From Klebsormidium nitens (lineage: Eukaryota; Plantae; Klebsormidiophyceae), in NCBI GenBank assembly GCA_000708835.1, contig DF237273.1, positions 38,816-102,815 of the forward strand: a stretch of 64,000 nt of DNA. The letters run 5' to 3'. Under the pieces are notes generated by a model. The model saw nothing but the letters and a program-made list of their open reading frames with translations. It ran no database searches and was not told the origin of the DNA. Numbering within the stretch: the stretch's first letter is position 1; each line of letters starts with the position of its first letter. Both the position numbers and the translations under genes were made by a program. Below are positions 7,880 to 61,810 of this stretch, one piece after another.

Positions 7880-8090
7880 TTATTAATGACACTGGCGTTT
7901 CAATATAATACCGCAAGTTGCTATTTGAGATATACAGCGTTAAATTTCTTAAGTCTAAGAGAGATCTATTCCCAGTGTCGGCCATGGCTCTTATACGCGG
8001 ATTTAAGGAGCTATATAAAATATATACAGTAGTTACTAGTTACCATGGTTTCTAGCGGGCAGATCAATGCACGACGTACAGCATAGGGTG
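7880..8090. promoter_or_regulatory. AT-rich, palindrome-rich core of the ALG6/DYRK divergent spacer with a TATA-like box (TATATAAAA, 8012-8020)
   Basis: Lies between head-to-head genes and is markedly AT-rich relative to its flanks. About 29 four-base palindromes in about 210 bp (hand count). Promoter function is inferred from position only. Confidence 0.4.
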
Positions 8091-8385
8091 ATTCGTGGAG
8101 CAGGTCGCTGGGAATTGGAGCCCTTGCCAGGGCCGTTAAGCATGGGGACGAGCACCTAGCTGCAGCCCTTACATTGTTCTCTATCGTACCTGTTGCTGGT
8201 TGCTTGAAGTTCAAGGGATTGTGACAGCGATGAAGCGAGGGCGCACTTTTGGCCGGACGTTGTGCTGAGCACCCATTCTGAGGCACCTTACGATCCCGCT
8301 GCGAGTTCACCAGATTAGCTACGATGGCCTTTTTTACTGTGTCCCATCAGAAAGGCCCGCCCTTTACTGGCAGCAAACCCGGTGG

Positions 8386-11300
8386 ATGATGAGCTCAAGT
8401 CGGCACGCATTGGCAGGAACAATGCAGGGTTCTGATGTAGCTTTCATCCTAGAGTTCCTCCGTCAGCATGATCTCAAGGTGGCGGAAGAGGCCCTCCGCA
8501 ACGAGTTGGCAGCAAAGGGCAACCTGCTGTCAGATCCACCTGTTGGCAAGGCCAGTGGGAAGGTTTCTGTTTCAGGGAACGGAAGCATCAGCCAGCTGGG
8601 ACTAGCTCAGTTGGTGACAGGTCCTGCTGCTCCTAGTGTTGAAGATGCAATCCCTCAAGGCCTGGCTCCAGTGAGGATCCATTCGAGCCATGATCTCCTC
8701 AAGGCAGGAGAAGAGCCGGTGGAAGAAAAGGGGAAGCGGAAATCAGTCTCCGACCTATCCATGGTCCCCCCGCCCCTTCCTATCGCCGAGCCAGTCACTT
8801 CCCCTGCCATCTCACCCCCTACACATGAGAGTAGTTCGGGCTCAATTAAGCACCATAATGTGCCTGCAAAACACAAACCCCGGGGGACGGGACACAAGAA
8901 CCAGAAGCAGCCAGGTGTGCATCCAATTCTGATCCTGCAGTACTTGTCTACCTCCCCAACAGTTTCAGTATTTGACTTCCTGAATGCATTTGATTCGTCT
9001 GCGTGGATTGGCACGTTTCAGCACGAACAGAATTGTGCTGCTGCCATATATATCCTTATCTGCTTGAGATGCGAAGAAAGCCATGAGATGTACTTTTTTT
9101 CTCAGCACACAAGTTGCAGACAATCAACCAGTGGATGGTTGTATGTTCTACAGGTGGGATGCATCTTGTCGGCCTTGTGATGTCGAGCTTGACAGAAGCA
9201 GAGAAATTGGAGAATGCAAGTACCAACGTCAAACCACCTTGCAAGCTTGGTCTTTTTGAATTGCTACCATACCTGCTGATGCACGCTGTTGTGCAGGGGC
9301 GGCCGATGGGAAGGCCGCTGGCTTCAAGCCAACCTGGGCGCGGCGGGAGTCCACAGAGAAGGGGGAGCCTGCAGAGCCTACTTCCCTGCAGCAGGCACGG
9401 GAGATGCTGCTGGGATTGGCAATGGGCGGAGAGCAGGCGGTGAGAGCCACTAAGGGCTCTGTTGCAGTAGCACTGCTGCCTTGCAAGGCAATCTGTGTGA
9501 TACCATAAAGAAACTTAATCTGCGCCAGCTTTTGCCAGGCTTAGGGAACGGTAGGGTTTCACTAGCTGGTGGTGTGGCGGGCATTTGAAAGCAACCAGGA
9601 CGAGGTGGAGAAGACTTGCGGTGATAGCCTCACTTCAGCATAAATGCAGGACTTGTGAAGGCAGCTGCCCTAAAGTTGCCTATTGCGGGTGCGGCAATCA
9701 ATTAAGCAGAGCTTGAGTTCAACTCGACTTATACTGGCTGAGCTTTCGGTGTCGGAAATGCTTATGTTGCATGTTCACGGGACTGAAGCGATATTATTGT
9801 GCGGACACTTCGAGTTTGCAAGTTGGAAATTTAGAAGCTTGATTGCTGTACAGCATTCTCCTGTACGATCGCCTGTGGTTGAATAGAGCAATAATATTTG
9901 GGGGTACATAGTGGTGGCGCGATGCCGTTGCAGTGTTGCTCCTTTTCTGGATTATTAGAGAAGGCAAAATCAGTGCATCAACATACTTCAGTGTGGCTGC
10001 ATTGATCCAATTTCTTTGACTATGTCAACGTGTCGCTGTTCACTTTTGCCAATCGACCATCAAAGAAGAACACTATGTGCTACAGCTCTTGCCTTTCCTC
10101 ATCAGGTTGTCTGAATCTGCTTGCTCCTCACTTGTCCAAGACTATTCCTTTGTGCCCACTTCCTTAACACCTCTTGTCTTGTCCCCGCCAGTCTGGGACA
10201 CGGCCGGCGGAGGAGGAGTGGGACAGCGACGAGTACGAAGACGAGGACGATGTTGGGTATCACCGGCAGGCCATAGAGGACGAGGAGGCCTTCCTGGCGA
10301 ATGAGATTGAGACGCCCCCCGAAGAGGACGAGGGCCGGAGGACCAGCGCAGGCGGCGAAGGGGCGCACGAAAAGAAGGAGGGCATTGGGGATGACCCGTC
10401 GTTTCAGGAGGAGGCGTACTTCTCAGGGGAGGAGTACTACAAGCTGGAGGGGAAGCCTCAGGAAGACGACGACGAGACGTCGTCCGAGGCGAGCGTTCGC
10501 GAACTGGAGCAGGCCCAGGCAAAGGCGCTGTCGCGGCAGAGCTCGGGGCTGGGGGATGAAAGCGCCGTGGTAGAAGTGGAGGACTTTGGGATTCTGACCG
10601 CTCCAGAGGGGGTGGTGGAAAGGCAGCGGCCGGGGGAGGGGGACGAGAAAGCGAGGAAGAAGGGCCTGGCGGACCTGCTGCAGAAGCTGACGGCAAAGCC
10701 TACGGAGAGGACGAGCAACGGCCGCCCCGCGGAAGAGATCCCGGGTAGCGAGAAGCTGACGGGAGTAGAAGCAGAGGCGGCCGAGGCTGCTGCAGTGCTC
10801 GCTCAGTATGAGAAGGCTGCTGAGGGCGCAAAGAGGGCCCCGGGCGCGCCGGAGGAGGGGCTCTCAGGGTTCTCCTTCCCCGAGCCCGCTTCCGTGGACA
10901 TTGCGCCTCCGATAATACTCGAAACAGGGGGCAAGTCGGTGTGGTCGGTGGACAACTTGTCCCCTGCAAGGACCGACCCCGAGGCGAACAACGAGTCCCC
11001 GCCCCTGGCGATGCCCGACGCAGACGACATGCTCGCGGGGTTTCTGCGCAAGAGCAACGAGACGTCGCCGGTTGCGAGTCCGAAGGAGGAGGTGCGAAAT
11101 GAGGAGGGGCAGGAGGACTTGGATGACGACAGGGGGGATAGCATGCGCGCGGAGGAGGGGGATGACGACATCGACGCGGCGCTGGAGGAGGGTGACGAGG
11201 ACGCGGCGGTGCACGAGCAGCTGCAGCGGATGAAGGCGGAGGAGGAGGAGTTCGAGGTGTTTGACTTGCGAGTGATCCACCGCAAGAACAGGTGCGCAGG

Positions 11301-14300
11301 CGGACCGTTGGAAGGAACAGACCTGGTGCCTTCTTAGGAGGGAAGCCAAAGAGAGCTTCTGGGAGGAGATGCAGAGAAGATGTCTTTCCATTCTATGACA
11401 GGGAGGACATAGTACCCTTTTCTAAGTGGACCTTCGGGCCTACGTGTAAGATCGTGACGCTATTGTGTGGGGCGTCTGCATCTCCTTTTAGGTTTAGTCA
11501 AAGACTGTTGTCTGTCGAGTATGCCGAGTGGCAGTCGGCTATTGCGGTCCTTTGTAATGATTGTAATTCTGCTTAGCACTCACACCTGTGAAAATTTTGT
11601 CATATGAAGAAGTGTCTGCAGTGAGAACAATTCCCACCTGTTCACACACGTCTGCTCAGATCGTGTTTGAAGATGCCCTCCCTCCCATGTGCAGGACCGG
11701 GTTCGAGGAGGAGAAGGACTTCCCGGTGCAGCTGAACGCGGTGGTCGCGGGGCGGTACCACGTGACGGAGTACCTGGGCAGCGCGGCGTTCAGCAAGGCG
11801 ATCCAGGCGCACGACCTGCAGACGGGGATGGACGTGTGCATGAAGATCATCAAGAACAACAAGGACTTCTTCGACCAGAGCCTGGACGAGATCAAGCTGC
11901 TCAAGTACATCAACAAGCACGACCCCGCCGACGAGCACCACATCCTGCGCCTCTACGACTACTTCTACCACCGGGTGAGCGCCGGGGCAGCGCACGTGAC
12001 CGAGCTCGAGAGCAAGTGGTTTAGTTGACAGCCATAAGTGGGGTCGTACTGGGCATCCTTGTCAAACATGGTTGTGACAGGCTACTGTTGGAAGCGTTGC
12101 ATATGCAAACAGAATACTATCAAATCACCAGATGCCAAGTGAATTGGCGCTGTTTGCCCATGTCTGATCGAAATTGGGTCGAAAGCACGGAAAGCTACAA
12201 ACCTGTTGACAGGTCAAGGAAACCCTTCACGTGCGGCTGACGGCACAGGAAGGTACGAAGTGAGTTGCACGGTCTTTGGCTGAAGTGAGTAAACAGGAGG
12301 GGTGGTTAACGTCCGCCTGCGCTGCTTTGCAGGAGCACCTGTTCATTGTCTGCGAGCTGCTGCGCGCTAACCTGTACGAGTTCCACAAGTACAACCGGGA
12401 GTCTGGCGGGGAGGTCTACTTCACCATGGCACGGATACAGGTGCGGCCACTTACCACTGCGATCGGTTTGGGGTCTGTAAACTATTGGAAGACACCTCCT
12501 TTTTGTCTAACGATTTGTAAGATCTTGGTCCGCCGTTTCTTGTCGTACCCCTCGTTGCCATCATGGATGATATAGACAGAGTTCTCTACTTTCCCGTGCT
12601 AGAGAGTGGTTGTTGCCTTCTCCAGGGAATAGTCATCCTTGGGCGTACTGTAGTGTCCACCCCCTGCAGCGGCTTCAGCACCAACTATTAGGAAGGCGGT
12701 AGTTCGCTTCTCTTTGTGGACCAAGCAGTCTTACTTTCGCCCGTCAGCTTCCTTTACTGATAATCTCTCCCGCCCTCGTCAGCCGGAAGCCTACATAGAC
12801 CCTCTTTCACGGCGAAGTTTTTGGTGTCTTCCCCCGAAGCCGAGTACCCTTTCCCTGTGACGCTGCTCCTGAACCGCCCCTCGCCCCTCTCTGCTCGCAG
12901 TGCATCACGGTCCAGATCCTGGAGGCGCTGCACTTCCTGCACGGGCTGGGCCTGCTGCACTGCGACCTGAAGCCGGAGAACATTTTGGTGAAGAGCTACT
13001 CGCGGTGCGAGATCAAGGTGATCGACCTCGGCAGCAGCTGCTTTGCGACGGACCACCTGTGCAGCTACGTGCAGTCGCGCAGCTACCGCGCGCCGGAGGT
13101 CATCTTGGGCCTCCCGTACAGCCACAAGATCGACATCTGGTCGCTCGGCTGCATCCTGGCGGAGCTCTGCAGCGGCACGGTCAGCGCCGCAGCCCCGATA
13201 CTCCTGCTCTAGTTCTCATATCGCTGGCCACATATGTCAAGAATTCACGGGTCAATTGATTGCTAGAAAGATGGCCAGAATGGAGGCTCGATGGATGACG
13301 GTGCCCCGAGTCTCTGGATGCTACGTGGCTCATTTCTGGGGTGGATGCTGTGGCCGTAGATATTAGGGTATCGCGTTTCGGTGTTGCTTTTTAGAGGGTG
13401 TCCAGGCAGGAGGAGCTCGGATGGTATGACGGTTTAGGCGGCAAGAAAGGTTCAGCGGTACCTGTTTGGTGTCCGTGAAATAAACACCAAACAACATTCT
13501 GGGGGCTATTGAGCAGAGTCGGAGCCCGCAATTGACGCATCCCACAAGTATATGGTGAACGACAAAGCAAAGAACCAGCAGTTTGTTTGAATCAGCGGAC
13601 TTTGTCGATCGTAGCTCTGTAATCTGCTCTATGGGCCGCGCCTCAAAGTGCGTCCCCTCGTGCCTACAGGTTCTCTTCCAGAACGATTCTTTGGCCACTC
13701 TGCTGGCTCGCGTTGTTGGCATCCTGGGCCCCATCGACCCGGCCATGCTGGCTCGAGGCAAGGACACCCACAAGTACTTTACCAAGGCCAACATGCTCTA
13801 CGAAAGGAACCAGGTGCGCCGAACAAGAGGCCTACCTTTTAGAAAGACGTTTCGTATCGTCCTTGCTAAGCAGTTCTGTTATCGCCGAAGGTCCGGATGC
13901 AAAAGTTGTGTATTCAAACCAACCTTCGCTGACCTTTGCATTCTTCTATAAGGGTTTCAAAGGTGCTGAGAGCAGGGCAGGAGAGTATAATTGCAAAAAT
14001 TGGTCGCCATTCCATTGCCATGCCATTGATCTGCTGCGTGATCTTGCTCTGTATTCCAGCCATTCCATTGTTCGATCTGCTGCGTAGTCTGTAGTCTTGT
14101 TCTGCACTCCAGCAACCGCAATTAACTGACAGGCCCTGTTTGCTTGGAACTCGCAGGAAACTGACCGACTCGAATACCTTATTCCAAAGAAAACGTCCCT
14201 CCGGCACCGCCTCCCCACTGGCGATGCTGGCTTCACCGAGTTCGTAAGCACGCTGCTAGAGACGAACCCCGAAAAGAGGCCTTCTGCTGAGGAAGCCCTC

Positions 14301-14342
14301 AGGCATCCTTGGTTAAAATTTCCTTACGAACCTTTCAACTGA
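8386..14342 (+). CDS. DYRKP: Plant-type DYRK (DYRKP-like) dual-specificity protein kinase with N-terminal LisH-like motif and long acidic linker
   Basis: N-terminal VAFILEFLRQHDLKVAEEALRNEL. Kinase exons: RYHVTEYLGSAAFSKA, KIIKNNKDFFDQSLDEIKLL, HCDLKPENIL, KVIDLGSSCF, SYVQSRSYRAPEVILG, DIWSLGCILAEL, KRPSAEEALRHPWL. Stop TGA at 14340-14342. GT-AG junctions are phase-consistent. Confidence 0.95.
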
Positions 14343-14559
14343 CAAGAAGGTATGACCAGGGCAAGAAAGGCTTAGAACGAAGTCACACATTAAGCTCATG
14401 AATGAGTTGATCACAGCATAGTCGGCTCCAAAGAGTCGAAATAAGGAAGTGTTTGACAGGTTAGCATGGACGCCCAGTCCGGTAACGAGAGCCAGCAAGG
14501 CATGAGTTTGTTGTGCGCCTGCCGTTTTGTACCATATAGTTGGTTCCTGGTCCTTAAAT

Positions 14560-14830
14560 GTCCACCTTTTGAAACAATGACCGATCAAATGATCCTACTA
14601 AGTTTCGTGATCTTGTAGACATTTTATGTGTCTCCGACATGGTCTGCATACTGGCCGCATTGCATGGTCCACGCCTGTATGCATACGCGAAAAATAAAGA
14701 AGCTATATCCAGTGATTGTCGACATATATGTGTACACATGTTCTAATATCTTATTCAGGATATTGCCTGACACACATGTGGCCGCTATTTTGAGCTGACG
14801 GTGAAATGCAATCGCATTAACCTGGTCGAC
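14560..14830. other. Palindrome-dense intergenic tract (DYRK/GNAT convergent spacer)
   Basis: Overlapping self-complementary words such as ACATATATGT, TGTGTACACA, ATGCAT, GTCGAC (twice) and CACATGTG. Confidence 0.6.
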
Positions 14831-14942
14831 ATTCTTGCTGTTGGACATGATGCTCCAAGTCTTCGAGAGCAAAGTACAGTCACAGGCTGGGGCCATGATC
14901 GATGCATTTGAATACGAAATTAATCTTTTGCAAGTAGGTTTG

Positions 14943-15541
14943 GGCATCGTGTCAAAACACCTGTGCAGTGGCGTCCGGACCTCCGGTTTTCCGAATTTTC
15001 TTGACGGGGCTGGTGGCCGGTTCTCGGAGCTCCCTGGCGAAGAGTCGAGGTGGCTGGTGGTCGGTGCCCGGCTGAGCATTTTCGACAGCTTTTAAAACCC
15101 ACAAAAATGTCGGAAAGTCTGCCTATAGATACTGCTCAACCTCGTGTACGTGTACCATACGGGTTGCCAGCTCCCTGCGAGAAGCCGCATGGGAGAGGCC
15201 ACACCAACCGACCGGTCTGGAACGAAATGGTCAAACGGGAAGTTTTGTCCTCCATTGAAGGGTCCGGCTGCATATGTAATCGGGTTATTGCCTTATACGG
15301 CTCTGAGTCGCACACGAGCCCTTTGCAAGTAGACTGGTTCGAATTCTAAACCTGGAGTGATTGATTGCGCGCGCAGGCCCCACCCTCGTATATCTATCTA
15401 ATCCCAATTTCTTCTGCGCCGCGGCTTGGGTACCCCTGGTGGCCGGTTTTGTCTGTATCTTTTTCTGCTCGCACCCCCCTGGTGGCCGGGTTTTTTTTCG
15501 GAGGTCCGGACGCCCTTGCAAAAGTGTTTTGACACGATGCC
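14943..15541. mobile_element. MITE, PIF/Harbinger (Tourist)-like, non-autonomous
   Basis: 43-bp terminal inverted repeats matching at 39/43 (GGCATCGTGTCAAAACAC...GGCGTCCGGACCTCCG; 14943-14985 and 15499-15541). A 3-bp direct repeat TTG flanks both ends. Internal repeated CTGGTGG(C/T)CGG motifs. No coding capacity. Confidence 0.75.
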
Positions 15542-16268: not shown

Positions 16269-16768
16269 CTATTGTTGCCCTGCAATTTGACTTTTATACT
16301 GTGGAAAGCGAGCCAAGAAAGTGTCCTGCAAAGCAGACCCATAAACTGTCTTCCTCAACATTTCTGAAAGGTGAAATACCACCAGGTAAGTGGAAGACCT
16401 CAAACATACAATCGCTAACTTACAAACACAAACATCTTCTTGGCATTGCAAGTATCAACTCGTTCTCAAGCCTCGACAGTGATTGCGTGCTGAGGACTTA
16501 CGCTGACGTAGCTGCATGATGGAATGACAGCCATGTTCCCCAACTTTGCAAACTCAAATGCCGCCTTGCTGAGTTCCGCTGCAGCTCCCTGGCCACGCCC
16601 TTCAGGTGGAACATATGTGTGATACAGATCTAGTGCCTTTTGTTGCCCATGCTGGATTACAGCATACTCGATGTATGCAAGGATTCCTGTGCCATTACTA
16701 ACATCAAGAACAAACCTGTGCCGGTCAGGCTCATGTAGAACAGGAGTGGCATTCATCGGCGCTGTCAT
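16269..16768 (-). CDS. Small GNAT-family acetyltransferase (At1g77540/YjdJ-like)
   Basis: Exon 1: MTAPMNATPVLHEPDRHRF...DLYHTYVPPEGRGQGAAAELSKAAFEFAKLGNMAVIPSCSYVS|gtaagt. Exon 2 (16269-16325): DTFLARFPQYKSQIAGQQ*. HTYVP-x3-RGQG-A and IPSCSYV are typical of this family. Confidence 0.85.
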
Positions 16769-16779
16769 TATGTATACGT

Positions 16780-16808
16780 ACCAAAGCACCAAAGCACCAA
16801 AGCACCAA
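16780..16808. repeat. Short tandem repeat (ACCAAAGC)x3.6 just upstream of the GNAT start codon
   Basis: Read directly: accaaagc accaaagc accaaagc accaa. Confidence 0.85.
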
Positions 16809-17787
16809 CGCATGAGCTTGCAGGACTGCAGATGCTCAAAAAGCACCCAACTCGTCACGCCATTGGCATTGCCTGCACATTCCTGCGACGGTCACCAGAC
16901 TCACCACCTTAGGCTTCGGTCCCTGCAATGCCTGCATCAGTGCATGCCGCAGCTTGCCGCCTTCTTCCACATGAGTGAGTAAGGTACAAAAAAATGGTAC
17001 ATGCCAGGTCAACGTGATCTTCCGAAAAGCAACCATGTCAAGAACCGGGTTGTTGATGAGTAGTGGAAGCTTGCCTTGCGCGCCCGGTGAAAGCTGAAAG
17101 GGCGACCAGCAGTACACATTGCGTACCAGCAAAGAGCCGCGGGCGGCGGGCATGAGTCTGCATATGACTCTCGAGTCTGAGTCTGCCGAGTTGACTGCGG
17201 CGAAACGCAGCTCTCTGAGTCTGGGTTGCACACGACTCGCAGAACAGGAATCAGGGATGGACTGCGAACTGGCAGGGAGGGGTCACCATGAAGGCGCGGG
17301 GTCCCTGCAGGCGCACGGATATTTGTGCTGATTATATGCGCCTGTAGATCCAGGGGGATGCCAGAAAAGATGCAAAATTGGGCAGTCGGTAGTTCAGGAA
17401 GAAGCGTTTGCTGCCGTTCTCGACAAGTTGCATCATAAGAAGCATTTTTGGTTTGAACAAGCATTAAAGAGGATGCATAGATATTTTGACCCATCAGAGG
17501 ACGTCCCTCTGTAGTTCACAGTGTGGGTAACGGATTGAAGGAAAGCGGGCAGACTGCCAAGGATGTTGGAGTGTTAGGCAGGTTCGGCAGCGTTCCCTGC
17601 AAGGGGTGTAGGCTCGCTGTTAAAGAGTCAGCCAAGAAGTCTGGGAAGGGGTACTGCTGACCATCCATGGGATTCTAGGAGCGATTGTTCTACGACGGAG
17701 CGGCCTTGACAAGCAAGCAGACTGATTCAGCAAAGGTTGCTGGGTGTTCTGCAAGGAGGGGAAACGTGGGCAAGAACAAATCGAGGG

Positions 17788-22719: not shown

Positions 22720-23000
22720 TTCTGGGCGCACATACACGCGCGCAAGAGTCCAAAGATTAGCTAGTTCAAATGCAGTGAGCCTTGCCGCTGGGCCAATCCA
22801 TAGGCTGGCACCTGCCAGGCTGCCACCATTTCGTAGTATGCATAGGACTAGCAACCGTAAGCAATTATTCAATAACAATGACGTTCTCTTTTCAAAACGC
22901 CGTAGCCACATGGGCCATAGGCTTCCATGGCATGTACATGGGAATCAATGTTTGAGTTGCGGACGCCTAGATGCAATAATACAAACAGAAGGCGTTGGCC
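22720..23000. other. Palindrome-rich intergenic tract (CK1/desaturase tandem spacer)
   Basis: Clusters such as CACGCGCGC, TAGCTAG, ATGCAT and CCATGGCATGTACATG. Confidence 0.5.
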
Positions 23001-24128: not shown

Positions 24129-24609
24129 CAGTGTTTCCCCTGCCGGCCCACTCTCTGGTAAAATGGCCGGCAATGGTCAAACCGGGCCGGCAATGGGGGC
24201 CGGCCTCCGGCCCATCCGGCCGGCATTGCCGGGCACGGGCCGCCGGCAATGAAAGTTCATAGCTGGCCCTGTCATCGTATTCCGTGTGTAAAACGATCAG
24301 GATTTCAGGAGATTTAAAGGTTATTGTCGAAAAAAACCTTCCCTCGGGGACTTCTGGCCAGCAGTATCCCTCAATGATCCCTTCGGTAGGACAGGTAGGA
24401 AGTTGGTCGATAATTTTACACGTAGATAAGCTAGAGACTTATGAAAGTATTGTAAAGTCGAATATATGGGGTGCGCGCGCGCGGAAATTCCACATATTTT
24501 GCCGGGACTTGGGCCGGCAATGGCGACCTCGGCCCGGCCCAACGGGCCGGCAAACTCAGGCCCCGGCCGGCCCGGCGGCCAGCAATTAAAATAATTAGGG
24601 GAAACACTG
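24129..24609. mobile_element. hAT-superfamily MITE (481 bp), apparently recent
   Basis: Perfect 13-bp TIRs CAGTGTTTCCCCT / AGGGGAAACACTG. Perfect 8-bp TSD GTTAAGCC (24121-24128 and 24610-24617). Many subterminal GCCGGC-type motifs in both halves with an AT-richer centre. Confidence 0.92.
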
Positions 24610-24977
24610 GTTAAGCCACTGTCCATAGGATTTTGGTATAATTACAGGTCCACCCGAGCACTTCTTGGTGTCCGAACAGGGTGTCCGCGTCCGATTCTCC
24701 CAAATTCTATTCGCAAACTTTGTGCCTCTTGCCTCAGTGAGGCCGTGCAAAACACACTGACGACCGCAGGGCTGGTGAGCAGAGCCAGTGGCAGAGGGGA
24801 GAACCACCACTGGCTTTCATGATCTCTAAGTTTGAAGAAGGCTGTTCACTGGTTCCCTGAAGCTCCGTTTCCTAGATCTGGGGTTGGTTGTCCCGTTTGA
24901 CAAATCTGGTGATCCGTGCTCAGCTTTTTAGCTTGTCTTTCAGGTGTGCAGGCAGCTTTGCGAAGGCGCTTGCCAGC

Positions 24978-35045: not shown

Positions 35046-35140
35046 TTAGGACGTGTTGGGCATGGCTGCCTGTCTGTCTCTTTAGACTTTAGTGGTCACA
35101 AGTCAGAGGTGGCCCCTACGAAACCCCCCAATACACGACA

Positions 35141-45900: not shown

Positions 45901-48900
45901 AACCACTGCCAGGCTTCATTTTGTTAGTGCACCTGCGACATGGCAGTTTCTGCGGATTCCGGGCTTGATTTTCTCAGGTACCACACAGAGTTCTTGGGAC
46001 TCGATACGAAAGGCTTTCCTTTACGTTTGCTAGACGGGCACTTGTGATTGCACATGTGACCTCAGCCTTATGTGTAGTAGCCAGGCTTGACTGGTATGCT
46101 AACACAACTCGTCGTTGCAGCCAAAGCTCTACAGCAAAGTTGTCACCATCCTAAGGCTGAGCTGCTTTGTTCAATTCGATGCATGGTCCGAGGTGTTTAC
46201 AGTCCCTCCTGCCTGTGTCATCCAGGCAATCTGAGCCGCATCCGCACCGCCCTCAAGAAGGGCGCGGCTACGCTTGGGGGCATTTTGGCAGGGCCTGCAG
46301 AGCGCCTTCTCCCAGACCTGGACCGCTTCTTTGCTAACACGTGGCGCCGCCACGCTACGGGCTTGCGACCAGACGTGGGAGAGCCCCGCCGTAGGGGGCA
46401 CAATCAGAGGGGACCTTCCAGCCCCCTGGCAGCACAGCAGGCTGCGTACGCCAATGGGTACGTTGGCGGGTCGATGTTTGGGGGTGGGGACGCGGATGTT
46501 GCCGGGGGGCGGAACGAGAGAGGGGCGATGTACCCGGAGGTAGGGGCGCCGTTCAGCAGTAGGGAGCTGGCGGAGGCGGCCAGGGCGGTGGCACGTGAGG
46601 TACAGGCGGGCGGCTCGGGGCGGCTCATGGAGAACGGGAGCTCTCACGGGGGGGCGCGGGGGGAGAAAATCGAAAAGGAGGGTAGCCGCGGTTTGCGATA
46701 TCAGAATGGGGGGGAAGATACGGAACTTCCAGGAGAGCACGTGAGGGGGGGCGTCCGTCCGCAGGATGTACCGAGGGCCGAAGTTGTCAGCGGGCGTGCC
46801 GCACTTGGGGTAGAAGCCGGCATCCGAAGTGGGAGACTTGAAGAGCGGGGCAGTTCTCGCCAGCGGCAGGCACAAAGAGACCGATCGCAAGAATCAGGCA
46901 GCCGGCATGCGGGTGGTAGCGCGCAAAGCACTCCGAGCAGCAGCCCCCGAGCGGGCGCGCCTTACCCTTCGGTTGCAGGCCCTAATCAGCATTTCGAGGC
47001 AGGTGCGTCGGGTGCGGTGGTGGACGGCGTGCCATTGTCGTTCTTCGGCGGCCTCCCCAGGGTATCCGGCACCGGCGCCTTCTTCCCTTCCCCCGACGCC
47101 CTCCGCGTGCCCAGTTCGCCCTCCGAGCCCGCCACCGGCCTGCCCTACTGGCTGCTGCAGGCAGCGAGTGCGCTAGGGGGTCCTCATATCGTGGAGGGGC
47201 TCCCCGTAGCTGCGGGCACCCCCCTGGAGCGAAGCCCTGCCGGTAGCGGCGGCGCGCAGCCAGGCTCCCTGCCGCGGCTGGTGGGGGACATTCCTATCCC
47301 TATCGTCAACCTGGAGGGGCCGCCCAGCCCCCGGGTCGCAGTAACCCGCTCGGTTTCCAGGTCCCCCCCCTCTTCCCGCTTGCTCGAACTCCCCCGGGGG
47401 CTCTCGGAGGCCGGAACCCTCGTAACACTTTCCAGCAGGTGTCTTCATCGCCGGCTGCCGGGTGGCTGCCCCCGTATGCAGGGTTTGTGGGTGGCAGCCC
47501 GGCGGAGGGGCTGCCGGGGGGCGTGCCTCTGCCGCCTCCCCTCCAGCTGCCAGAGCCAGCCAGCGGCAGCGGGGCAGAGGGGCACCAGGCAGCGAGGACA
47601 AGCGAGCGACGCATACAAGCGGACCAGGCGGGAGTGCGACATGGGGACGAGGGACGGGGGAACGGAGAAAGGGCACGAGGGTACGAAGGGGAACAGAGCA
47701 GAAGCGGAGCGGTTCCGGGCAGCGCGGGCGGAGGGTACCAGTGGGGGGAGCAAGAGGAGTTGCTGCTGCGGGCCGCAGAGGCAGGGGTGCCGGGGCTGGC
47801 GCTGCCAAGTGGGATGCTGTCCTGGGGCCAGTTTGCCGACCCGCATTTCCATTTGCAGCAGCTACTAGCGAATGGGTATGGGGCCAGTAGCTCGGGCCTG
47901 CAGTATGCAGCGCAGCAGTATGGGGGTTATGCGCCACAGGGGTCGTTCAGCCCGCGCAGTGGGCGGCAGGAGCAGAGGAGCTTTGGGCGCCAAGGGGGGG
48001 CCGGAGAGGGGCAGGGCCGAGAGGAGCGAGGAAGAAGCAGTGAGCGGGATCAACAGGTGCGGGGAGAGCGGGCCGGCGAAGGAACTACGGGGTTGGGAGA
48101 GCATCAGACAGAGGCGATGTCGCCAAGCAGTCGGCGAAAGCACGAAGAGAGCGGCAGAGGGCCATCACGGGAGCGGTCGGTGGATAGGCGCACTGCTGTG
48201 AGCAGCCCGTGCGGGAGCGGAGCGCTTGCAAACGGGATCGCAGCAGCGCAGGGTGGTGCAACGCTGGAACGGAAGGGGAGCATGGAGCGGGGAAGCAAAG
48301 GGGGCTCAGTTCGGCAGGCGTGGGTGGCTAAGGGGGGAGAGGAGGGCCAGGCCGCTGTACGGGATTCGAGCGCGAACGCAACAAGGGAAGGGCAGTCAGG
48401 AAGCACGCATAAGAGCACGGAAGCGGCGAGTGAAGACAGGGCTGGAGTATCGAAGCCACAAGTCGAGGAGAGGGCTTTGGCTGGCCCGGTCGAGAGCAAG
48501 GAGAGCCTGCTTGAAGGAGAGAGAAGCAGACGAGGGGGGGTGGCCGCAGCAGGGGCTGGCAACGGGCGGGGCGCAGGCCACCGGAGGCAGTACAGCGAGG
48601 GCAGCATCGACTTCCAGGCCCGTCAGGCGGTCCCTGCCGCCGCATTTGCAGAGATGGGTACCGCTCCGGGGGCGGACCGCTCCCCTCGCGGCATGGTCTC
48701 AGTGGGCTCCTTGCCTGACCAGCTGTTGTATTGGCCGAATGGCCCGAGCCTCGAAGCGGGCCTGCCGGGGCCGATGCATCTTCCCCCGGGTTCCATGCCC
48801 AACTTCCCTTCTTATTATTTTCGCCGAGAGCAACGGCAGGAGGGAAGAGAGTTTACCCCGGGGGAGGCCAACGGAGAAGCGGCGCACGAGCAGGCCCGGC

Positions 48901-51071
48901 CGTCGAGACCCGATGCGCGAGACGCTGGACGTGGTGAGGGCGAAGCTAGGCAATGGAGCCAAGAGGATGACTGGTTGCAACGGGCGCAGTCCCCTGCGGC
49001 TGGAGAAGCAGCGCACGCACGGCCGCGCCCTCAGCAAGGCTCGGTCAGTGCCCCGCCAGGGTACCCGCCCGCCTTTTACATCCCCCACGTCGGCATTCCG
49101 TATGGACCGGCCTTTTCCTGGGAGGCTGCGGGAGGCCTCTCGTTGAACCCCAGCATGAGTGGGCGGGGTGTGGGGACGGCCAGCGGCGCTGCGCAGCCCT
49201 CCCTTGGCGCAGCAACGGAGAGCCAGGACCCGAGCAGAAGTGCGGACGACGAGTCCGCCTCGGACGAGGACCTTCTGGAGGGGGACCTGGAGGCCCACCT
49301 GCGCAGCCTCGAGTTCGGGCGGCACTGCCAGCAGCAAGTCGACCGCGGCCAAAAATGGCAGCCGCCGTTGCCCCCGCCGCAGGCACCGCCCGGCGCGCCA
49401 CCTCAGGGGCAGTACGGGAACTCCTTCTCGGGTTCTGCCCCGCAGCAGAAGGGCCAGCCGCGCTCCAACAGCCACCCCGGCGCTCATGCCCCCCACATAT
49501 ACGGCCCCACGCTTCGGTCCCCGCAAGGGGGCCCGACACCGCACTGGCAGCAGCCCCCCCAGCAGCAGCACAAGTTCAGCGGGAAGGGCCAGCGCAGCGG
49601 GGGATCCCTCACCCTGCAGCGGCACGGAGAGGAGGCGTTCCGCCAGATGCGGGGGGGCGAGGGGCGCAGCGCGGGGGTGTACTCGGACCCCGGGCGATTG
49701 TACATGCCGCAGGGACACGGCGTTGGGGTGCATTTCCTGGAGGGCGATGCGCGGCAGCCCGCTGACCTGTTTGCGCGGGGGGGCGTGGTGCGTGGCGACA
49801 GTTCCTGTAAACGCTTTCGTACCCGTTTTCGCGCGTAGGCAACAAGTTGTTCGTGCCAGGTCACCTGCTTCCTGTCCTACCTCTGTGCTGATTTTGGAAG
49901 CGGTCGACGGGAAAGCAAGCTTCAGGTTGATTCCTGCCTGCTCATCCCGTTTCTTGTTTGCCACAGGGCCCTGGCATCCCACGCGTGCGCAGCGCTGACA
50001 GCTACTCCTCGGAGGGCCTGCACCTGGACCCGCGCGGCCCGTCCGCGCGCTACCTCGACGCGCGCATGCAGTCCCCGCGCATCGCTCGCGTGCCCATCCG
50101 AGTGGGCGCTTCCGCTGACTTCCGCTTACACCAGTACTCTCCTAAAGACGGGCTTGACATTCGGGAACAGGGCCGGGGGGGGCGTGATGGCTCAGAGAGG
50201 CCAGACTGGCAAGTGGCCGGTGGGTACTTCCCGGGGACGAGCGTGTCGCCCCGCCTGGAGGCACCCATGGCTGGTTTCAACCCGGCCCACTGGCTCGTGG
50301 GAGTCCGCCGAGGAGCTCCGTCTGAGGCCTTCGGCCAGGGAGCACCGAAAGGCTATCCCACCCCCCCGCAGCAGCCGAGCACGGGCGCAACTGACGAGCG
50401 GCCGCGGAGTGTGCCAGGGGTCCCGGCAGGGGCCATCCAGGAGGACACCTCGGCGACACCAAAGTTAAGATCGATCCGGGAGTCCGAGGAGAGGGATCCC
50501 CTTCCGGGGCTCCTTGAAAAGGAGGCAGGCGCAGAAGGGGGGCAACGGAGAGGGGAGGGCTGGGAACGCCCCTCTCAGCCGCAGCGAGGGGCGGATGTGC
50601 AGCCGGGTGGCAGGGACGTGGAAGAAGCTGGCCGGGAGCTGGAGCGGCAAGCGTCGGGCGGCAGCGCTGCGGGGCTGGAGCAGCAGGCGGGGGGCGGAAA
50701 CGCAGCGGGGCCAGAGGAAGGCACGGAGGCGGAGGAGAGGTAAGCGGGAGCTTTTAAACGACTGCCTGCGATCGGTGTAGTCAGTATGATTCGATTGGAA
50801 CTGGTAAGAGACAGGGCTCTGCAGAGGACTGAGTGTGAGTCCTGTGTGACGTGCTGAAGGATGCATCGGCGGGGTCGTCGGTCGAAGAGCCCAGATCCTC
50901 GATACCATTGGTGCTATAACGCTCCGCCCTTCTGTGTGCTACAGCAGCCAACAGTTCAGCGAGGAGGACTTCCCTCCATTGTCAACCAAAGCGCAGCCTG
51001 GCGGCCGGAGTAAGCCGGGGTCAGCCAGCCCTCGGTCTGGGAAGAACTCCCCCAAGGGCGGAGGCGCATAG
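42934..51071 (+). CDS. Non-canonical poly(A)-polymerase-like nucleotidyltransferase (plant NTP / PAP-OAS1 substrate-binding family) with a very long disordered C-terminus
   Basis: RRRAIVNYVCNLI, TFGSVPLKTYLPDGDIDV (GS...DxD), VKLIKCLIENIVVDISFNQ (third Asp), HLFKRSVILVKAWCYYESRILGAHHGLISTYALETLV, FDWDKHCLSL, MNIQDPL...NNLGRSVSKGNLSRIRTA. Later exons encode a G/R/E/S/Q/P-rich tail ending ...FSEEDFPPLS...GGGA* (TAG 51069-51071). Confidence 0.88.
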
Positions 51072-51339: not shown

Positions 51340-52140
51340 ATGCACGAGGTTCACTAGATAAACATACTTGGCCAATCTGCATGGCATAATCAAGTTACTT
51401 GGCGCCTTACTAAGTTGGATGACGATGTATAGCTCGTAGATCATTTGCAGTGGTGCACGATAGCACGCTTATTGAGTTCTCAATGGCATGTGCAGCTCCG
51501 ATTAGCCGCTATATAGCTAGATGGAAAGTATCGTGCCCGCATGAATGAGTGTCGGATCCGGACTCCATATGATCGGTCGGATCGAGCATGTGCTTAAAGA
51601 GCACGTTGGACTTGATATACCGTCCGAACCGGCGAAATGTTGGATCCAACTTGGGCTCGAGCTAGTGAAATGTTCTAGCACCTTTGGCAAGCGCGCTCGC
51701 GACTTTCTCCGTAAAAGTGAGCAATCGAAACTCGGTCGAGCCAACTTTTCTCCTTTTTCCGCTCGCCGCGCACATCGAGTGCGCGGTCTCGGTTACGTAC
51801 AGTGGTTTTGGTTTCCGAAGTCACGCATGCAAAACTGCCGGGCGATACAAATTTGCTGCGTACGCGGCTGACGTCATGCGGATGCATCCGCCGACGCCCT
51901 CTTTAAGCATGTCATTGTGATTATATGCGTCACATGTGCGACTCGCAGACCACGTATGTTGCATGGCACAGTTAGTGTATATAGCGGTAACGGCCGCGGT
52001 CGTTTGGACTCTTAAGGTTAATTATGCGCGACTCGACGACCGTTCACATGGTAAGCTGTACGTGATGGTATACATAGACTGCGGCATGTGACCGGGCCTG
52101 CATTATGCTGTAGACGTAGTGACCATGAAGGTCAGATCGA
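51340..52140. other. Palindrome-dense intergenic tract (nucleotidyltransferase/NDF5-like convergent spacer)
   Basis: About 27 four-base palindromes in 51901-52100 (hand count). Includes the perfect 14-mer GCGGATGCATCCGC and GCGTACGC. Confidence 0.65.
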
Positions 52141-52324
52141 AAACACTGGTCACAGCCAGCTGAACCCCAAACAAATTTGAATCTCCTCCTTTTCAAGTTT
52201 AATTGCAGGATTCCATGCATGACTTTTTGGTCAGGAAACCGAACCGGATAAAATGGGAGATCTAGTGATACGGGCTTCGATTGGCCGAATCATCGGCCCG
52301 GCGCATACGAGCATGCACACGTGT

Positions 52325-55240
52325 TCATTTTTCTAATCGGATCGTTTGTCTACCTTCCCAGCTCTCACCGGGCGCCAGCGTTATCTTTCGGTGGTTCCCG
52401 GCACCAAGACAGAGGAAGCTCGACTCTTGCGTAGATGACCCCGAATCGACAAGAACAACGTCCTCAAATCCTTCCTTGACCAGAGTCATCGTTCGATAGC
52501 CCCCCTGCAAGTGTCCAATATGACCAATCGTTGTCACTGTTCACAAGGATCGGCTGGATTCGAACAACATGCCAAAGAGAGTCCTCACAACCGTCCCGAC
52601 GAAACCTGCGTCCCATCTCATTGAGCACAGAAGCAACACTAGCCAATGACGATTCAACAGCTGCACAGCTTCTCAAAATGAAGAAGGGTTGCGTCCTCAC
52701 TCGGTCGAAGAGGCTGACAGCAGCTTGAGGTTTGCAGTATATCCGCTCTGTGCTCTTCCCTAATGGCACGTCTTGCTGCTTCTCCGCCCCCTTAGCCTGC
52801 ACATCAGAATTGGGCCCACAAATAAGAGATGGGCGCATATTCTCACGGTGTTCGGCAACAATCTTTTGCCTGCGACTGGTGCCCGTTGTCGTGCATAGGG
52901 AGCGAAGCGAAGCAGTAGCGAAAAGTTCTGGAAACCAAGTGAGCCAATAAAGACGCGCGCGAATTTCTGAAATCGCGGAGTGGCGGGAGTGCCTTAGCAG
53001 GCCCCAACTGCCCGCAGCATTTTCGCACGAGCTTCAGGCTCGCTGACGGACGCCACCAGGGACTGACACCTCCGCCTGCCGCAGCGACAGTAGGCCAAGA
53101 CAGACCCAGGCTTCCCTGGCAGCTACCAAGCAGCGGAGCTGCAAAGTGAAACATGAGCTTTTTGAAGAATTGCAACAAGCTTAATTAGCGTACCTTCCAG
53201 TTCCGGTTCAGTTTTGTCCGTGTCACGTACTTGGCCCCCTCAAGCCCCATGACCGTCGCGCCCGCAGGATCCACCACCTCAAGATGCGAATCGAGGGAGG
53301 CGCCAAACGAGAAGGGCCGCGCGTCGCGATTGTGGCAGCGCAGGACGCACACGAGGCGGTCCGGCAGCTGGTGCACCGAGTAGCGCAGAGCGAAGCGGTG
53401 CGGCCACAGCGCGCGCGTCGCGGGGGTGTCCTCCAGGCTCAGCACGATCTGTGGAGGGGAAAGGAGTACCAGACAAAGCTCATTCCTGGTGCACATGCCC
53501 ATCGAATGCCACAACGACAGCAAAACGGGCGTTGAAGACTGTCAAGTGCCGGCCTCCGAACTTTCGTTCCTTCAGAAATGGCAAGTTAACCACAAGGCCA
53601 TCCCGGATCATCAAGAAGGAGGCGCTTTGGAACTTCCTTTGACGGCCTCGCAGAGGTCTCCACACGGGTCGCAATTAGAGACGGCCTTCATCAAAACGTA
53701 CAATCACGCACCGCTTCCGCGAGGCTGTCGTACTTCATCCAGTGGACCATAGGACGTGTCCATAGGCCACATGGGCCTCAAGAGGAAGCAGACCCACCTC
53801 CGCAAAGGCGTCCCCGTCCGCCCACGTGCTGACCACCCGCCACGGCATCTCGCGCACCAGGCTGGCCAGCGAGTTACTGCTTTGAATCCCAGCTGCGCCT
53901 TCTGCCGGCTCTGGAAAGCTGACTGGAATGCCGCCCCGCAGCCAGCCCTGGCCCTCTGCGCGGGTCCTGCAACAGAGACCCCCAATCAATCGCATGTCAA
54001 CACTATGTTCAATGCGTCAGAGACCTCTTTTAACTTACCTGCCTCCATGCTCGTGAATCCTGCCAGCTAAACCATCCCGCTTCAACAGGTTTTTGTCTCA
54101 AAGTGTTCCGCACCAGCCTCAAGATGCCACAACCATCAGAAGCTATCCTGAGCGAATTTCGACTTGAATTTGTCCAGCGGGAAAGAAGCAGGCAGCTGGT
54201 GCGCTTGCCTGTTAAGCTTGCTGTAGATGAGGTCCTCCTTGCCCTTGTGGTACATGACCGCCCGCCACGCGATGACGCGCGCCCCCTCCAGCAGGACCCT
54301 CACGCTGCTGCCCTCCGCCAGCTTGAGCACGGCCACCCGCAGGCCAGACACCTCCTGGAACTCCACACCGGGGCAGCGGAAGCGCTCGCGCAACTCAGGA
54401 ATACTCTGTATGGCTGCCTCAGGCTCTGAGGCGCCTGCAGGGAGTGGGGGTAGATTCTTCGTGAAGGTGAAAACAAGCGCACAGGCTCAAGGATTTGTTC
54501 TCTCCTTTTTCTCAAGTATTTGCGATACATTTACAGTCCAGTATGGCATATACTCTTGGTGGCGCCAAACCGACTTGGTCCCATGTCACTTCCCAAAACA
54601 GCTTTGATGGGTTTTCTGTTCTGGTCAGACTTCCGGGGGCTTTTACGTGATTGGTTGTGAGAAAGTCTCCGACTGTTGATGTTGGTGACGGCGAAAGCCC
54701 CCAGTGTTTCCTTCACACATGACAATTCGGGACGCCTTTTGATGGGGCCCCATTTGCAAAGCAATCATAATGAGTGTTAAGCACAGGGGAAACACCAGCA
54801 TCCAAGCTGGAAATATTGTGCAGGCTCACTGCCAACACCACCAAGTTGCCCACTTCTCGCACTTACTGGGCGGTTCAAACAATTCTGATTGTGAAGAGGG
54901 TCATCAGGAACGCACCTTGATCATTGCTGCTCTCTGCAATTTCCACAGAGGCAGCATTGCACTGAAGGAGACTACCACCACTCCGAGATCGATGTGCTGT
55001 AGCGAAGAAAGTTTTCGTAGGTGTAGTGGGAAGAACTGGTCTGTTCCAGCTTTCCCTCCTCCATCCAGGTTTTCTTGTTACTGCTGTAGGACCTCTGGTA
55101 CAACTGTCTACTAGGAAAGGACCCCACACTGGGACATTGCTCAAAGCGCATGGGCTAGCCACACACGTGCTTTTTGCTGGAAACCTTCCGGAAGATGAAA
55201 CGATTGAGGCAGAGGACAGGTGTCTAGAACAGGACGCCAT
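52325..55240 (-). CDS. NDF5: Plastid-targeted galactose-mutarotase-fold protein, NDF5/PnsB2-like
   Basis: A Ser/Arg-rich transit peptide exon (55240-54914) is followed by ERFRCPGVEFQEVSGLRVAVLKLAEGSSVRVLLEGARVIAWRAVMYHKGKEDLIYS, LRGGIPVSFP, SLDSHLEVVDPAGATVMGLEG, TERIY, EGFEDVV and ITLAPGESWEGRQTI. The fold call is firm; the NDF5 orthology rests on remembered similarity and needs a phylogeny. Confidence 0.7.
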
Positions 55241-59100: not shown

Positions 59101-61292
59101 GTTCCGTGCTCGTACTCTTTCTTGCCTGCTAGCAGGCTGGGTCTCTCCCTCGCTCGATCTTGTGCTGGCCGGTTTGAAGTACAACGATCCAATCGAGCAG
59201 GTCGAACGTTTCGCCAGAGGTGTACGCCGTTCTCCTGACAGACTTGCCTGCTTATTGCCTTTCACTGATGAGCACTATACCGTCTGCTCTCCTCACTTGT
59301 GACGCGTGTGCGGCGTGCAGGGGCCTGGCCATGCTGCGCTACTTCGACCCCGCGTTCCTGGACGCCATGGCGGCCTCCGTGTGCGTGCGCGTGGCCGAGT
59401 TCGAGGACACGCACCTGGCGAGCGTGCTCTTCGCGTATGCCTCCTTCGGGGCCGCCGGGCCGCCCGACTTCCTGCCCACGCTCGCACGCGAGGTCAGCCG
59501 CGCTATGATGAGTGGACGCGTTCGTTTCGCCTTCCTGTTGAAACCTGCGATCTTCCGGACTCGCTTCCCTTCGCCCTTTCTCAGGCTCGCACAAAGCCAC
59601 AAGTCAACGCCAGTGTGTAATCTAGTCCACTCAGATCACCCTCAGATCAGCAGTAGCTGTGGAAATTCACGGGCTGGCCTCCCTGCAAATGTCAGTTTTC
59701 CGCAAACACCCCAGCTCGTGTTTTTCGCTTGCCGCCACCTGACGATTCTCATCGAACTTCGGGTGCAGGTACTCCGCCGATTGCGAACCGGTGCTGAGTT
59801 CAAGCGCGCGTCGCTGGTGAACATTGCGTGGGGGTTCATGGTGCTGGGCTGCTACCCCCCCGCCCTGTTCGCTGCCATGCGGCCCGCGCTGTACCGCGGC
59901 CCCTTCCTCGCGCACGAGGCCGCCAAGCTGCACCAGCTCGAGCTCGCGCTGCGCCTCGAGGCGCCCACCATTGCGCCGCCCCACCCGCCGGGCGACGTGG
60001 CCGCTCTCCTGGAAGACCTCTGGCAGCAGGGCGACGCTAAGTACCGCGCCAAGGTGTGGGGCCCGCGCCTTGAGAGACTCGTTCGCCGGGTCTCAGCTCG
60101 CTGCAACACAGGCGGCCGCTCGAGTCCCGAGACTGTCCGAGTTGCCCGCACTTGAGCTCTATTAAGAACTCGCTTCGGAAGCAACGTACAAGGACCGCTT
60201 CTGAGGTGTCCCAACGTTTCCCCAGCAACGGCTTTGGCTTGCATTGCATGCGCTGGCATGCACCTGAACGTTATTGTGAAAGCAAGAGAGCCATCGATTT
60301 AGGCAACCGTCTGCCTGCCAATTGGGAACGGCCGATCAACCCGCCCTCGAGCTGATCCTGGGCGTGTGCCCGCCCTGCGTGCAGCTGTATTGGGCCAAGA
60401 TGAACCAGGGGGCCCAGGTGGTGACGTCGGCGCTGCAGCGCGACGTGCACGCGTCCTTGGAGCGGCTGGGCGTGGCGGCGCACGAGGAGTACGCGGACGG
60501 CGACCACGTGCTCGACATTGCGCTGCCCGCGCAGCGCATCGCCGTCGAGGTGGACGGGCCGCACCACTTCGCCGCCAATGCGCGCCGCACCCCGCTCGGG
60601 CCCACGCGCCTCAAGCACCGCCTGCTGCGCAGGCGCGGTTGGCGCCTCATCACGGTGAGGCGGGCGAGGATGGGCCGTGACGGAGGGGAGCAGTGCGGTT
60701 TGTTGGAGATGCCGCCCCTGCGCGACGACCTGTTCGTTGCAAAGCAAGCTGACTGGCTTTGATGAGACCATCGCAAAGACCAGATTGATTCGCATTTTTG
60801 CAGTGGGGTATGCTGGCTCGCAATAGCCAGACAAACTGTAAGTTTTTGTTGTGGATCTGGCCTTTGCGGTTGGACTGAGCCGCTGAGGCGCTGCCTGTTG
60901 GGTGGCCGCAGGTGCCCCATTACGAATGGGAGGCGCTGAGCGGCGACGAGGCGCGGGATGAGCACATGCGGCAGCGCCTGGAGCCCCTGGTGCGCGCCGC
61001 GCAGGAAGACGCGGCAAAGGAGGCACCCGCCCCAGCCGGGCAGCCACCTGCAGAACAGAGCGGGCGGCCGTCATCAGATGCGCCCGCCAACAACCACCAG
61101 GAGAGACGACCAAGCCAAGAAGCGCAGGCGGAGATACTGGCACGCTCGGAGAAGCTGAAAATGCTGGCGGCGTCGAGGGGCAAAACGGGCAAAATAGACA
61201 TGTTGAAAAGGGCAGCCGTTCGACGTGCTCTGTTATCAAAAGGCGGGACTAAAGACAGCGACTTGGACTCGAATCAAGCTACAGGTGATTGA
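56101..61292 (+). CDS. OPR-like helical-repeat protein with C-terminal RAP domain (organellar RNA metabolism)
   Basis: Repeats of about 38 aa ending in SLANLAW, WQIAQLAWAFAK, TPQSLSLLLGSW, APENLAALIW, TPLEASNLLWGLAML, DTHLASVLFAYASFG and RASLVNIAWGFMVLG. RAP domain: LDIALPAQRIAVEVDGPHHF...GPTRLKHRLLRRRGWRLITVPHYEW. The start codon is uncertain. Confidence 0.85.
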
Positions 61293-61369
61293 CTGGCTGC
61301 AGGTCTTACTGTCCTGACCATTTCTGTCGAGTTGGCCGACATGTTGAATTATAGCCTGAGCAATCATGG

Positions 61370-61810
61370 TAGTCCGGTCTCATGCAATGATTTGATTTCC
61401 AAAGCGACGGCCTGCATGCATGATTGAGCTGCAATTGTATGTGAATTTAAAACCATGATGCGCAACTGGGATCGCTCCGGCCTGCGCCGGTGGGCGCCCC
61501 GAGCTCGCATGCATAATATAGCTGCACGTGATAATCGCGATCATTTATAGCATGTGCCAGTGTGAGCTACGGTCCAATGATATATCTAGCGAGACGGTAG
61601 CTGCAATGGCCGGACAGGTAGCTCGCCGGCCGTAAGTTGGTATGTCCATATGTTTCGAGCTATCTAGATCCCCAGTACATTGGCTAACAACAAATGAATG
61701 GCCGTGCATGAGATCCGACTATCATATACGTATGGATATCAACCGCGAGTCCGACTGAGCGCGCGAGTACGTTGAGAATACTGACATGCTTAAGTCCTCT
61801 CGGTGCGCGG
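61370..61810. other. Palindrome-dense intergenic tract (RAP/ATG8 convergent spacer)
   Basis: 34 four-base palindromes in 61441-61640 (hand count), covering most of the 16 possible words. Confidence 0.7.

Follow-up and report, generated by a model that had tools for sequence, protein, structure and literature searches.

The 64,000-nucleotide stretch of the Klebsormidium nitens genome analyzed here (contig DF237273.1, positions 38,816 to 102,815; this whole stretch is referred to as the window, and positions are numbered within it) raises the question of why several of the gaps between its genes are packed with short palindromes. We find that these palindromes are concentrated in four strong islands, called B, C, D and E, that all four islands lie in gaps on the 3′ side of genes, and that the unit of their texture is the perfect 4-bp palindrome. 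The reading we favor, with a probability of roughly 0.4, is that the islands are a maintained two-way termination or boundary zone, and we infer that selection would be what maintains them.

A sequence-only reading of this DNA had counted palindromic 4-mers by hand in six places, and all six counts are reproduced: 34, 34, 27 and 34 per 200 bp in four tracts, and 7 in an intron and 19 in a kinase exon (180 bp each). Across the window the mean is 12.1 per 200 bp with a standard deviation of 4.9; windows and words containing N are omitted from this and all other counts. Each interval listed in that reading was tested against mono-, di- and trinucleotide-preserving shuffles of itself, and at five of the listed places the excess it had claimed for the tracts persists under all three (Table 1). 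A weak excess is present at 14560-14830 (z 1.8-2.0, and 3.3 when the interval is widened to 14300-15100). The claim that divergent and tandem spacers share the texture stands weakly at 34880-35045 and at 7880-8090, where the excess is modest (z 2.6 and 2.5 for di- and trinucleotide shuffles), and falls at 22720-23000 and 3230-3520, which show no enrichment over shuffles (z 0-0.7).

Mapping the whole window in 200-bp windows against dinucleotide shuffles places the maxima at 37951-38350 (z 6.5), 28801-29300 (5.5), 24301-24650 (4.5) and 61251-61850 (4.4), and the mean z of this composition-corrected map is 0.21. A two-state hidden Markov model (HMM) finds five islands, B to E (limits in Table 1) and 24165-24593, which together make up 4.2% of the window. 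The fifth is a look-alike that lies outside the island grammar: it falls in a hAT-type MITE (miniature inverted-repeat transposable element) whose palindromes are nearly all of GC-only types (GGCC, CCGG, GCGC) and come from internal GGGCCGGCAATGG-like subrepeats. The palindrome pattern in the convergent gaps is confirmed as real. A full-text literature search, with most subscription journals outside its coverage, turned up no account of 4-bp-palindrome islands between genes, either in Klebsormidium or in any other eukaryote.

Where the islands lie was established from Pfam matches on single open reading frames (ORFs) and from tblastn of fetched SpoU homologues, with exons searched singly, and from a strand map built with a codon-usage model that was trained on verified exons and, in leave-one-out tests, scored the sense strand higher for all 11 of them. 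All four strong islands are in 3′ gaps. Islands B, C and D lie between convergent genes (Pfam, tblastn and strand map) and E lies just past the 3′ end of a + strand gene; the proposed tie to convergent junctions holds within this window. By Pfam and tblastn the intervals 14560-14830 and 38030-38420 are convergent, and by the strand map 28700-29340 and 51340-52140 are as well; the - strand ORF ending at about 29667, beyond island B, resembles a protein C-terminus. Of the window's five convergent-type gaps, one has no more than a mild excess, and tracts on the 5′ side of genes are weaker.

The limits of the islands are sharp. Palindrome density is 27.5-28.8 per 200 bp within islands, 10-16 in the 320-520 bp between a stop codon and the island, and 10-12 beyond it. 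At the SpoU locus, for example, the values per 200 bp are 12.7, 7.5 and 8.2 in introns, 13.9 in exons, 16.2 in the 321 bp after the stop codon, 28.8 in island C and 11.9 in the next 622 bp, and a similar step is seen at B and E and at the weaker tracts A and F. The islands are 0.5-0.8 kb long, three of them 476-483 bp by the HMM. Relative to base composition, the observed/expected ratio is 2.24 in the four strong islands and 1.82 in tracts A and F, against 0.91 in coding-like segments, 0.80 in non-coding DNA within gene spans and 0.89 in the 28 kb of unassigned DNA; thus, the texture is not general to non-coding or intergenic DNA. Exons, verified introns and DNA beside stop codons do not rise above expectation (0.8-0.9x). 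The islands are also strand-neutral, and the verified introns and exons are strand-asymmetric.

Within the tracts all 16 palindromic 4-mers exceed a second-order Markov expectation, and all except GCGC exceed a first-order one; summed over the palindromic 4-mers, observed/expected (Markov) is 1.64 in the tracts and 1.04 in the rest of the window. The seven highest of the 256 4-mers by observed/expected are palindromes. The signal belongs to palindromic words: AGCT occurs at 2.5x and AGNCT at 0.45x, and CTNAG is at 0.55x despite strong enrichment of CTAG. Complementarity between positions is elevated only at distances 1 and 3, the palindrome excess peaks at loop 0 (z 11), and inverted repeats with loops of at least 3 show no excess in the tracts. 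Palindromes of 6 and 8 bases, the xyNNy′x′ class and the spacing between palindromes are all recovered by 4-mer-preserving shuffles, and neither tandem duplication of palindromic 4-mers nor palindrome clustering rises above 4-mer composition. The excess of self-complementary dinucleotides lies entirely within 4-mer palindromes; where the flanks are non-complementary, 26% of center pairs are self-complementary. The grammar has the perfect 4-bp palindrome as its unit, and longer forms add nothing to it. Compared with shuffles, the islands have folding energies that are only mildly lower (minimum free energy z -1.0 to -2.8), and secondary structure is weak.

Three other descriptions of the texture were tried and ruled out. 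Alternation of purines and pyrimidines, as in Z-DNA, fails because the enrichment does not extend to other, non-palindromic words of these classes; patchiness of AT-rich and GC-rich DNA fails because the class of words with one complementary pair does not rise; and odd palindromes are not a signal of their own, being heterogeneous (GCNGC and ATNAT are high) and due to abundant GC, AT and CG dinucleotides.

The islands also have a common word preference. CATG (50), AGCT (34), TGCA (34) and TATA (33) are high, and GTAC (12) and TTAA (13) stand at the composition baseline, which is about 11 for each. CATG ranks first among the palindromes of the strong islands C, D and E and second, after TATA, in B. 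TATA occurs at 12.4 per kb in the tracts and 1.2 per kb elsewhere (about 10x), and TATATA is found in A, B and D. Word counts are correlated between B and C (Spearman 0.53), B and E (0.69) and C and E (0.73); for pairs with the more diffuse island D the values are 0.33-0.40 and not significant. A model in which the excess of each word is proportional to the frequency of its half-site dinucleotide is rejected (chi-square 60.8, 14 degrees of freedom, p 8e-8).

This common preference comes without common descent that we can detect in the window, as all-against-all BLAST of island against island gave no significant alignment. The 8- to 11-mers that islands have in common stand at z of about 4 over dinucleotide shuffles and at only 1.5-2.4 over 4-mer-preserving shuffles. 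Thus, the description of the tracts in the sequence-only reading as a shared compositional grammar rather than a repeat family is borne out: the islands do not align with one another, and the 9- to 11-mers they have in common are nearly explained by 4-mer composition. The longer common motifs GCATGCAT, GGCCTAGCTC and CTATATTGAA are suggestive, but we set them aside given the overall z of 1.5-2.4 against the 4-mer-preserving null.

As a separate observation, the 8-mer GCATGCAT, which is RY-like and contains TGCATG, occurs at 26826, 28395, 29276, 38237, 38429, 61414 and 61507. The + strand carries seven of the window's eight copies and the - strand one, as an overlap; five are within B, C and E, and most are followed by TA, AA or GA. 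It could be a directional motif, in what is a small sample. The 8-mer TGACGTCA occurs once in the window, at 51869, inside island D and outside genes.

Of the alternatives that the sequence-only reading had set out, a selected boundary or termination element fits best with the location of the islands and their common word preference. We favor a two-way termination or boundary zone because the islands occupy 3′ gaps, three of them convergent, have sharp limits, are strand-neutral and use common words without homology. In a self-complementary word each of two converging transcription units would meet an identical signal, and so would a DNA-binding reader that is a dimer; since such a word is the same on both strands, a short gap common to two genes would favor words of this kind. 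In the yeast Saccharomyces cerevisiae, bidirectional termination zones are nucleosome-depleted, and the palindrome UAUAUA, a poly(A) efficiency element, serves there as a two-way poly(A) signal (bioRxiv 10.1101/2022.11.02.514956). In K. nitens such words might be read by the termination machinery, by proteins that act as dimers or by type II topoisomerase. Type II topoisomerase makes a 4-bp staggered cut, the same length as the word. A role for this enzyme, whether in a signal or in a repair reading, is speculation from the 4-bp unit and the convergent location.

Several points weigh against a maintained termination or boundary zone. The evidence base is one 64-kb window with four strong islands. 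We know of no reader that favors nearly all palindromic 4-mers, and 14 of the 16 types are above the composition baseline, a breadth that resembles a generic symmetry-making process and not a set of binding sites. The density of about 28 palindromes per 200 bp, at which 38-47% of island bases lie inside palindromes, is very high for discrete sites. Finally, words with one complementary pair are at 0.965x and words with none at 0.905x; a selection-type model predicts 0.93 for both classes and a neutral-insertion model about 1.03 and about 0.86, so the observed values fall between the predictions of the two. The broader proposition, that the islands form a class of genomic punctuation, read identically from either side, which has so far gone unrecognised in streptophyte algae and would be kept by selection despite turnover of the sequence, we put forward tentatively and consider doubtful.

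The main rival to a termination or boundary zone is mutational renewal, in which a repair process adds or rewrites two nucleotides as the reverse complement of the adjacent two and so regenerates 4-bp palindromes. Such events might come from hairpin-capped ends that are opened at a distance of 2 nt from the tip, or from breaks associated with type II topoisomerase activity where genes converge. Templated synthesis yields complementarity between positions naturally, the breadth of palindrome types just noted is what it would give, the pair-class counts could arise under a simulated neutral process of insertion and decay, and an exact 4-bp unit would fit a fixed 2-nt offset. That offset would, however, have to be exactly 2 nt, as there is no dinucleotide excess outside the 4-mer palindromes and no 6-mer excess beyond 4-mers. 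In a simulation with substitution decay the observed 2.06x is reached only at about 0.3 insertions per substitution, together with matching deletions, within about 500 bp. Word usage is far from half-site frequency and yet is common to the islands, non-palindromic 4-bp tandem duplications are near expectation, and the verified introns, which tolerate indels, carry no signal. We regard renewal as possible but on balance unlikely. Template switching in its usual form, which the sequence-only reading had offered as a mutational bias of untranscribed DNA, finds no support, given that inverted repeats with loops of at least 3 are not in excess and that 6- and 8-mers follow 4-mer content.

A passive by-product is improbable. 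Here the gaps would be the only DNA free of pressures linked to transcription or methylation, and their neutral equilibrium would be rich in CG, TA and palindromic words. The odds of CG and TA in the islands are indeed undepleted (1.13 and 1.04) when those elsewhere are depleted (0.77 and 0.58), the islands are strand-neutral, and palindromes containing TA have the highest island-to-rest ratios. But the excess stands against each island's own di- and trinucleotide content, and context effects on point mutation are blind to complementarity of positions i and i+3. Moreover, the unassigned DNA, much of it non-coding, is below expectation, and 4-mer palindromes explain the self-complementary dinucleotide excess fully.

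We give still less weight to the possibility that the words are targets of symmetric DNA modification (5-methylcytosine at CG, N6-methyladenine at ApT, or the marks of several enzymes), kept because both strands need the mark. The commonest word, CATG, has an ApT center, maintenance methylation requires self-complementary sites, and according to a review (PMC9861306) Klebsormidium has a cytosine methyltransferase set like that of land plants. However, AGCT, TGCA, GGCC and CTAG, which contain neither CpG nor ApT, rank with the most strongly enriched words, and most of the words have no known enzyme.

Mobile elements are present in the window. The 481-bp MITE is non-autonomous, has GTTAAGCC as its 8-bp target-site duplication and a fold-back z of -4.7, and is located upstream of a + strand gene; islands B, C and E are of nearly the same length (476-483 bp), perhaps by coincidence. 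Segments at 22877-22970 and 28706-28802 match at 74% over 101 bp in inverted orientation. Both are outside the palindrome core, the second adjoins island B, and no terminal inverted repeats were found in either; they are probably fragments of one mobile-element family. At the ends of islands B to E the best long-range inverted repeats do not go beyond what 4-mer-preserving shuffles give, and a search there for target-site duplications found none. Excision footprints of hAT elements retain the duplicated 8-bp target site. Adjacent direct repeats (at least 7 of 8 bp matching, at offsets 8-14) number 3 in the tracts, with 9.6-10.8 expected, and 9-bp repeats number 0, with about 3 expected. Loop-free short palindromes, a trait of hAT footprints, are present in the islands, and this trait is not specific to the family. 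The suggestion of accumulated hAT excision footprints in the sequence-only reading is thus unsupported, as there is no excess of 8- to 9-bp direct repeats, the half-site model is rejected, and about 0.3 insertions per substitution would be needed. That the islands are decayed transposon insertions or stacked hAT-type footprints is the least probable explanation we consider, in spite of the MITE, the MITE-like 100-bp segment beside island B and the three islands of near-MITE length: the islands align neither to the MITE nor to each other, neither terminal inverted repeats nor target-site duplications exceed chance at their ends, and the palindromes of the MITE are GC-only when the island grammar is mixed.

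The genes and other features are collected in Table 1. The SpoU exon has its closest named relatives in streptophytes (Mesotaenium and many land plants), a 128-aa protein from sequencing-run assemblies is 97% identical to it, and the matches from a metagenome scan were all distant SpoU relatives (49% identity or less). No Rfam families or tRNAs were found in the window. Two approaches to gene limits were dropped: a self-trained exon/intron HMM, which over-fitted and gave hundreds of tiny exons or fused genes, and a six-frame "ORF-poor" criterion, given that ORFs of at least 55 codons span nearly all of the window. The 5 kb from 46000 to 51000, which end just before island D, have a GC content of 63-70% and contain very long ORFs on the + strand, the longest of 799 aa, with no Pfam match; the block may be a large gene for a low-complexity protein.

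A run of N at 30801-30820, followed by alternating G and N calls to 30912, lies within a G-rich tandem repeat, and an identical 29-mer at 30772 and 30920 flanks this assembly gap. The repeat itself (30680-30980) has a period of about 148 bp and is part of a region with a strong GC skew (+0.35), which the codon statistic assigns to a proline-rich-looking gene on the - strand. The gap has no bearing on the islands, as the nearest is about 1.5 kb away and words and windows with N were excluded.

Table 1. Palindrome islands, tested intervals, genes and other features of the window (ORF, open reading frame; z for tested intervals is against mono-/di-/trinucleotide-preserving shuffles)
Feature	Position	Strand	Palindromic 4-mers and z	Neighbors, limits or basis
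Island B, strong	28839-29321		70, 29.0 per 200 bp; z 5.2-5.5 (dinucleotide shuffles)	HMM; + gene with coding-like segments to 27722; - gene, last ORF stop about 29667 (strand map)
Island C, strong	38062-38537		71, 29.8 per 200 bp; z 5.0-6.5	HMM; begins about 350 bp past stop of SpoU-type methylase (+); other side is 3′ side of ubiquitin-conjugating-enzyme-like gene (-)
Island D, strong, more diffuse	51487-52319		98, 23.5 per 200 bp; z 4.2 (di), 4.1 (tri)	HMM; GC-rich + gene ending near 50740; - coding segments 53224-54426 (strand map)
Island E, strong	61327-61809		76, 31.5 per 200 bp; z 5.5	HMM; directly 3′ of FAST/RAP-domain gene (+) (RAP and FAST_1 matches; coding-like segment to 61172)
Tract A, weaker	7825-8195		42, 22.6 per 200 bp; z 3.3	5′ of ALG6/ALG8 glycosyltransferase gene (-) and of + ORF starting 8386
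Tract F, weaker	34865-35085		25, 22.6 per 200 bp; z 3.7	Just 5′ of SpoU-type gene (+)
Kinase (+)/GNAT (-) convergent spacer	14300-15100		Mild excess, 16.2 per 200 bp; z 3.3	
Tested interval	28700-29340		z 6.4/4.8/4.6	
Tested interval	34880-35045		z 3.9/3.9/2.7	
Tested interval	38030-38420		z 7.7/6.0/5.7	
Tested interval	51340-52140		z 5.9/4.2/4.1	
Tested interval	61370-61810		z 8.5/5.4/6.0	
hAT-type MITE, 481 bp	24129-24609			Perfect 13-bp terminal inverted repeats (start CAGTG); perfect 8-bp target-site duplication
ALG6/ALG8 glycosyltransferase	C-terminal exon 3549-4055, N-terminal exon 6875-7291	-		
Protein kinase	Exons within 11567-12025, 12799-13209	+		Pfam
GNAT acetyltransferase	16469-16891	-		Pfam
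SpoU-type RNA methylase	Exon matches 35471-35605, 36016-36456, 36967-37056, 37277-37705	+		Pfam, tblastn
Ubiquitin-conjugating-enzyme-like (UQ_con), weak	39103-39504	-		E 8.4e-5, below Pfam cut-off
FAST_1/RAP-domain gene	About 59220-60759	+		Pfam
Strand-map segment	24951-27722	+		
Strand-map segment	29704-33306	-		
Strand-map segment	To 50737	+		
Strand-map segment	53224-54426	-		

Beyond yeast there is little understanding of how a compact eukaryotic genome halts polymerases that converge and keeps adjacent genes insulated, and almost nothing is known of this in the streptophyte algae, which among algae are the closest to land plants. A texture of convergent junctions that is computable from DNA alone could locate termination or boundary zones and improve the annotation of gene ends, and it could provide short terminators that work in both directions for engineering plants and algae. 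Should it instead be a repair scar, it would be a new and highly localized mutational signature that reveals the sites and the manner of double-strand-break repair in untranscribed DNA. What is new here is the 4-mer-only grammar with its word profile, the tests for target-site-duplication remnants and spaced repeats, the insertion rate that renewal would need, the limits of the islands and the separation of the MITE look-alike.

Comparison with known systems is informative. The repetitive extragenic palindromic (REP) elements and intrinsic bidirectional terminators of bacteria resemble the islands in that palindromic DNA is concentrated between convergent genes. They are, however, homologous repeat families or GC-rich stem-loops with arms of at least 10 bp, and the islands have 4-bp words only, with neither homology nor a stable hairpin. 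P-nucleotide additions and hAT footprints, which arise when hairpin-capped ends are opened, likewise consist of short, perfect, loop-free palindromes, and hAT-type elements are present in the window; unlike them, the islands have no target-site-duplication remnants, use non-random common words, are strictly of 4-bp unit and would need one event per about 12 bp. Like CpG islands, the palindrome islands are discrete, a few hundred bp long and gene-flanking, with CpG undepleted (odds 1.13, compared with 0.77 elsewhere; the CpG-island criterion is an observed/expected ratio above about 0.6). Unlike CpG islands, they have AGCT, CATG, TGCA, TATA and CTAG equally or more enriched and are strongest at 3′-3′ junctions, not at promoters; CpG retention accounts for the CG-containing words only, and for only part of the excess.

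The termination zones of yeast are AU-rich and have one motif, whereas the islands are about 50% GC and enriched for almost every 4-bp palindrome, CATG, AGCT and TGCA reaching the level of TATA. Both, on the other hand, are short, lie between convergent genes in a compact genome, are enriched for a self-complementary word (TATA in the islands) and have a strand-symmetric composition.

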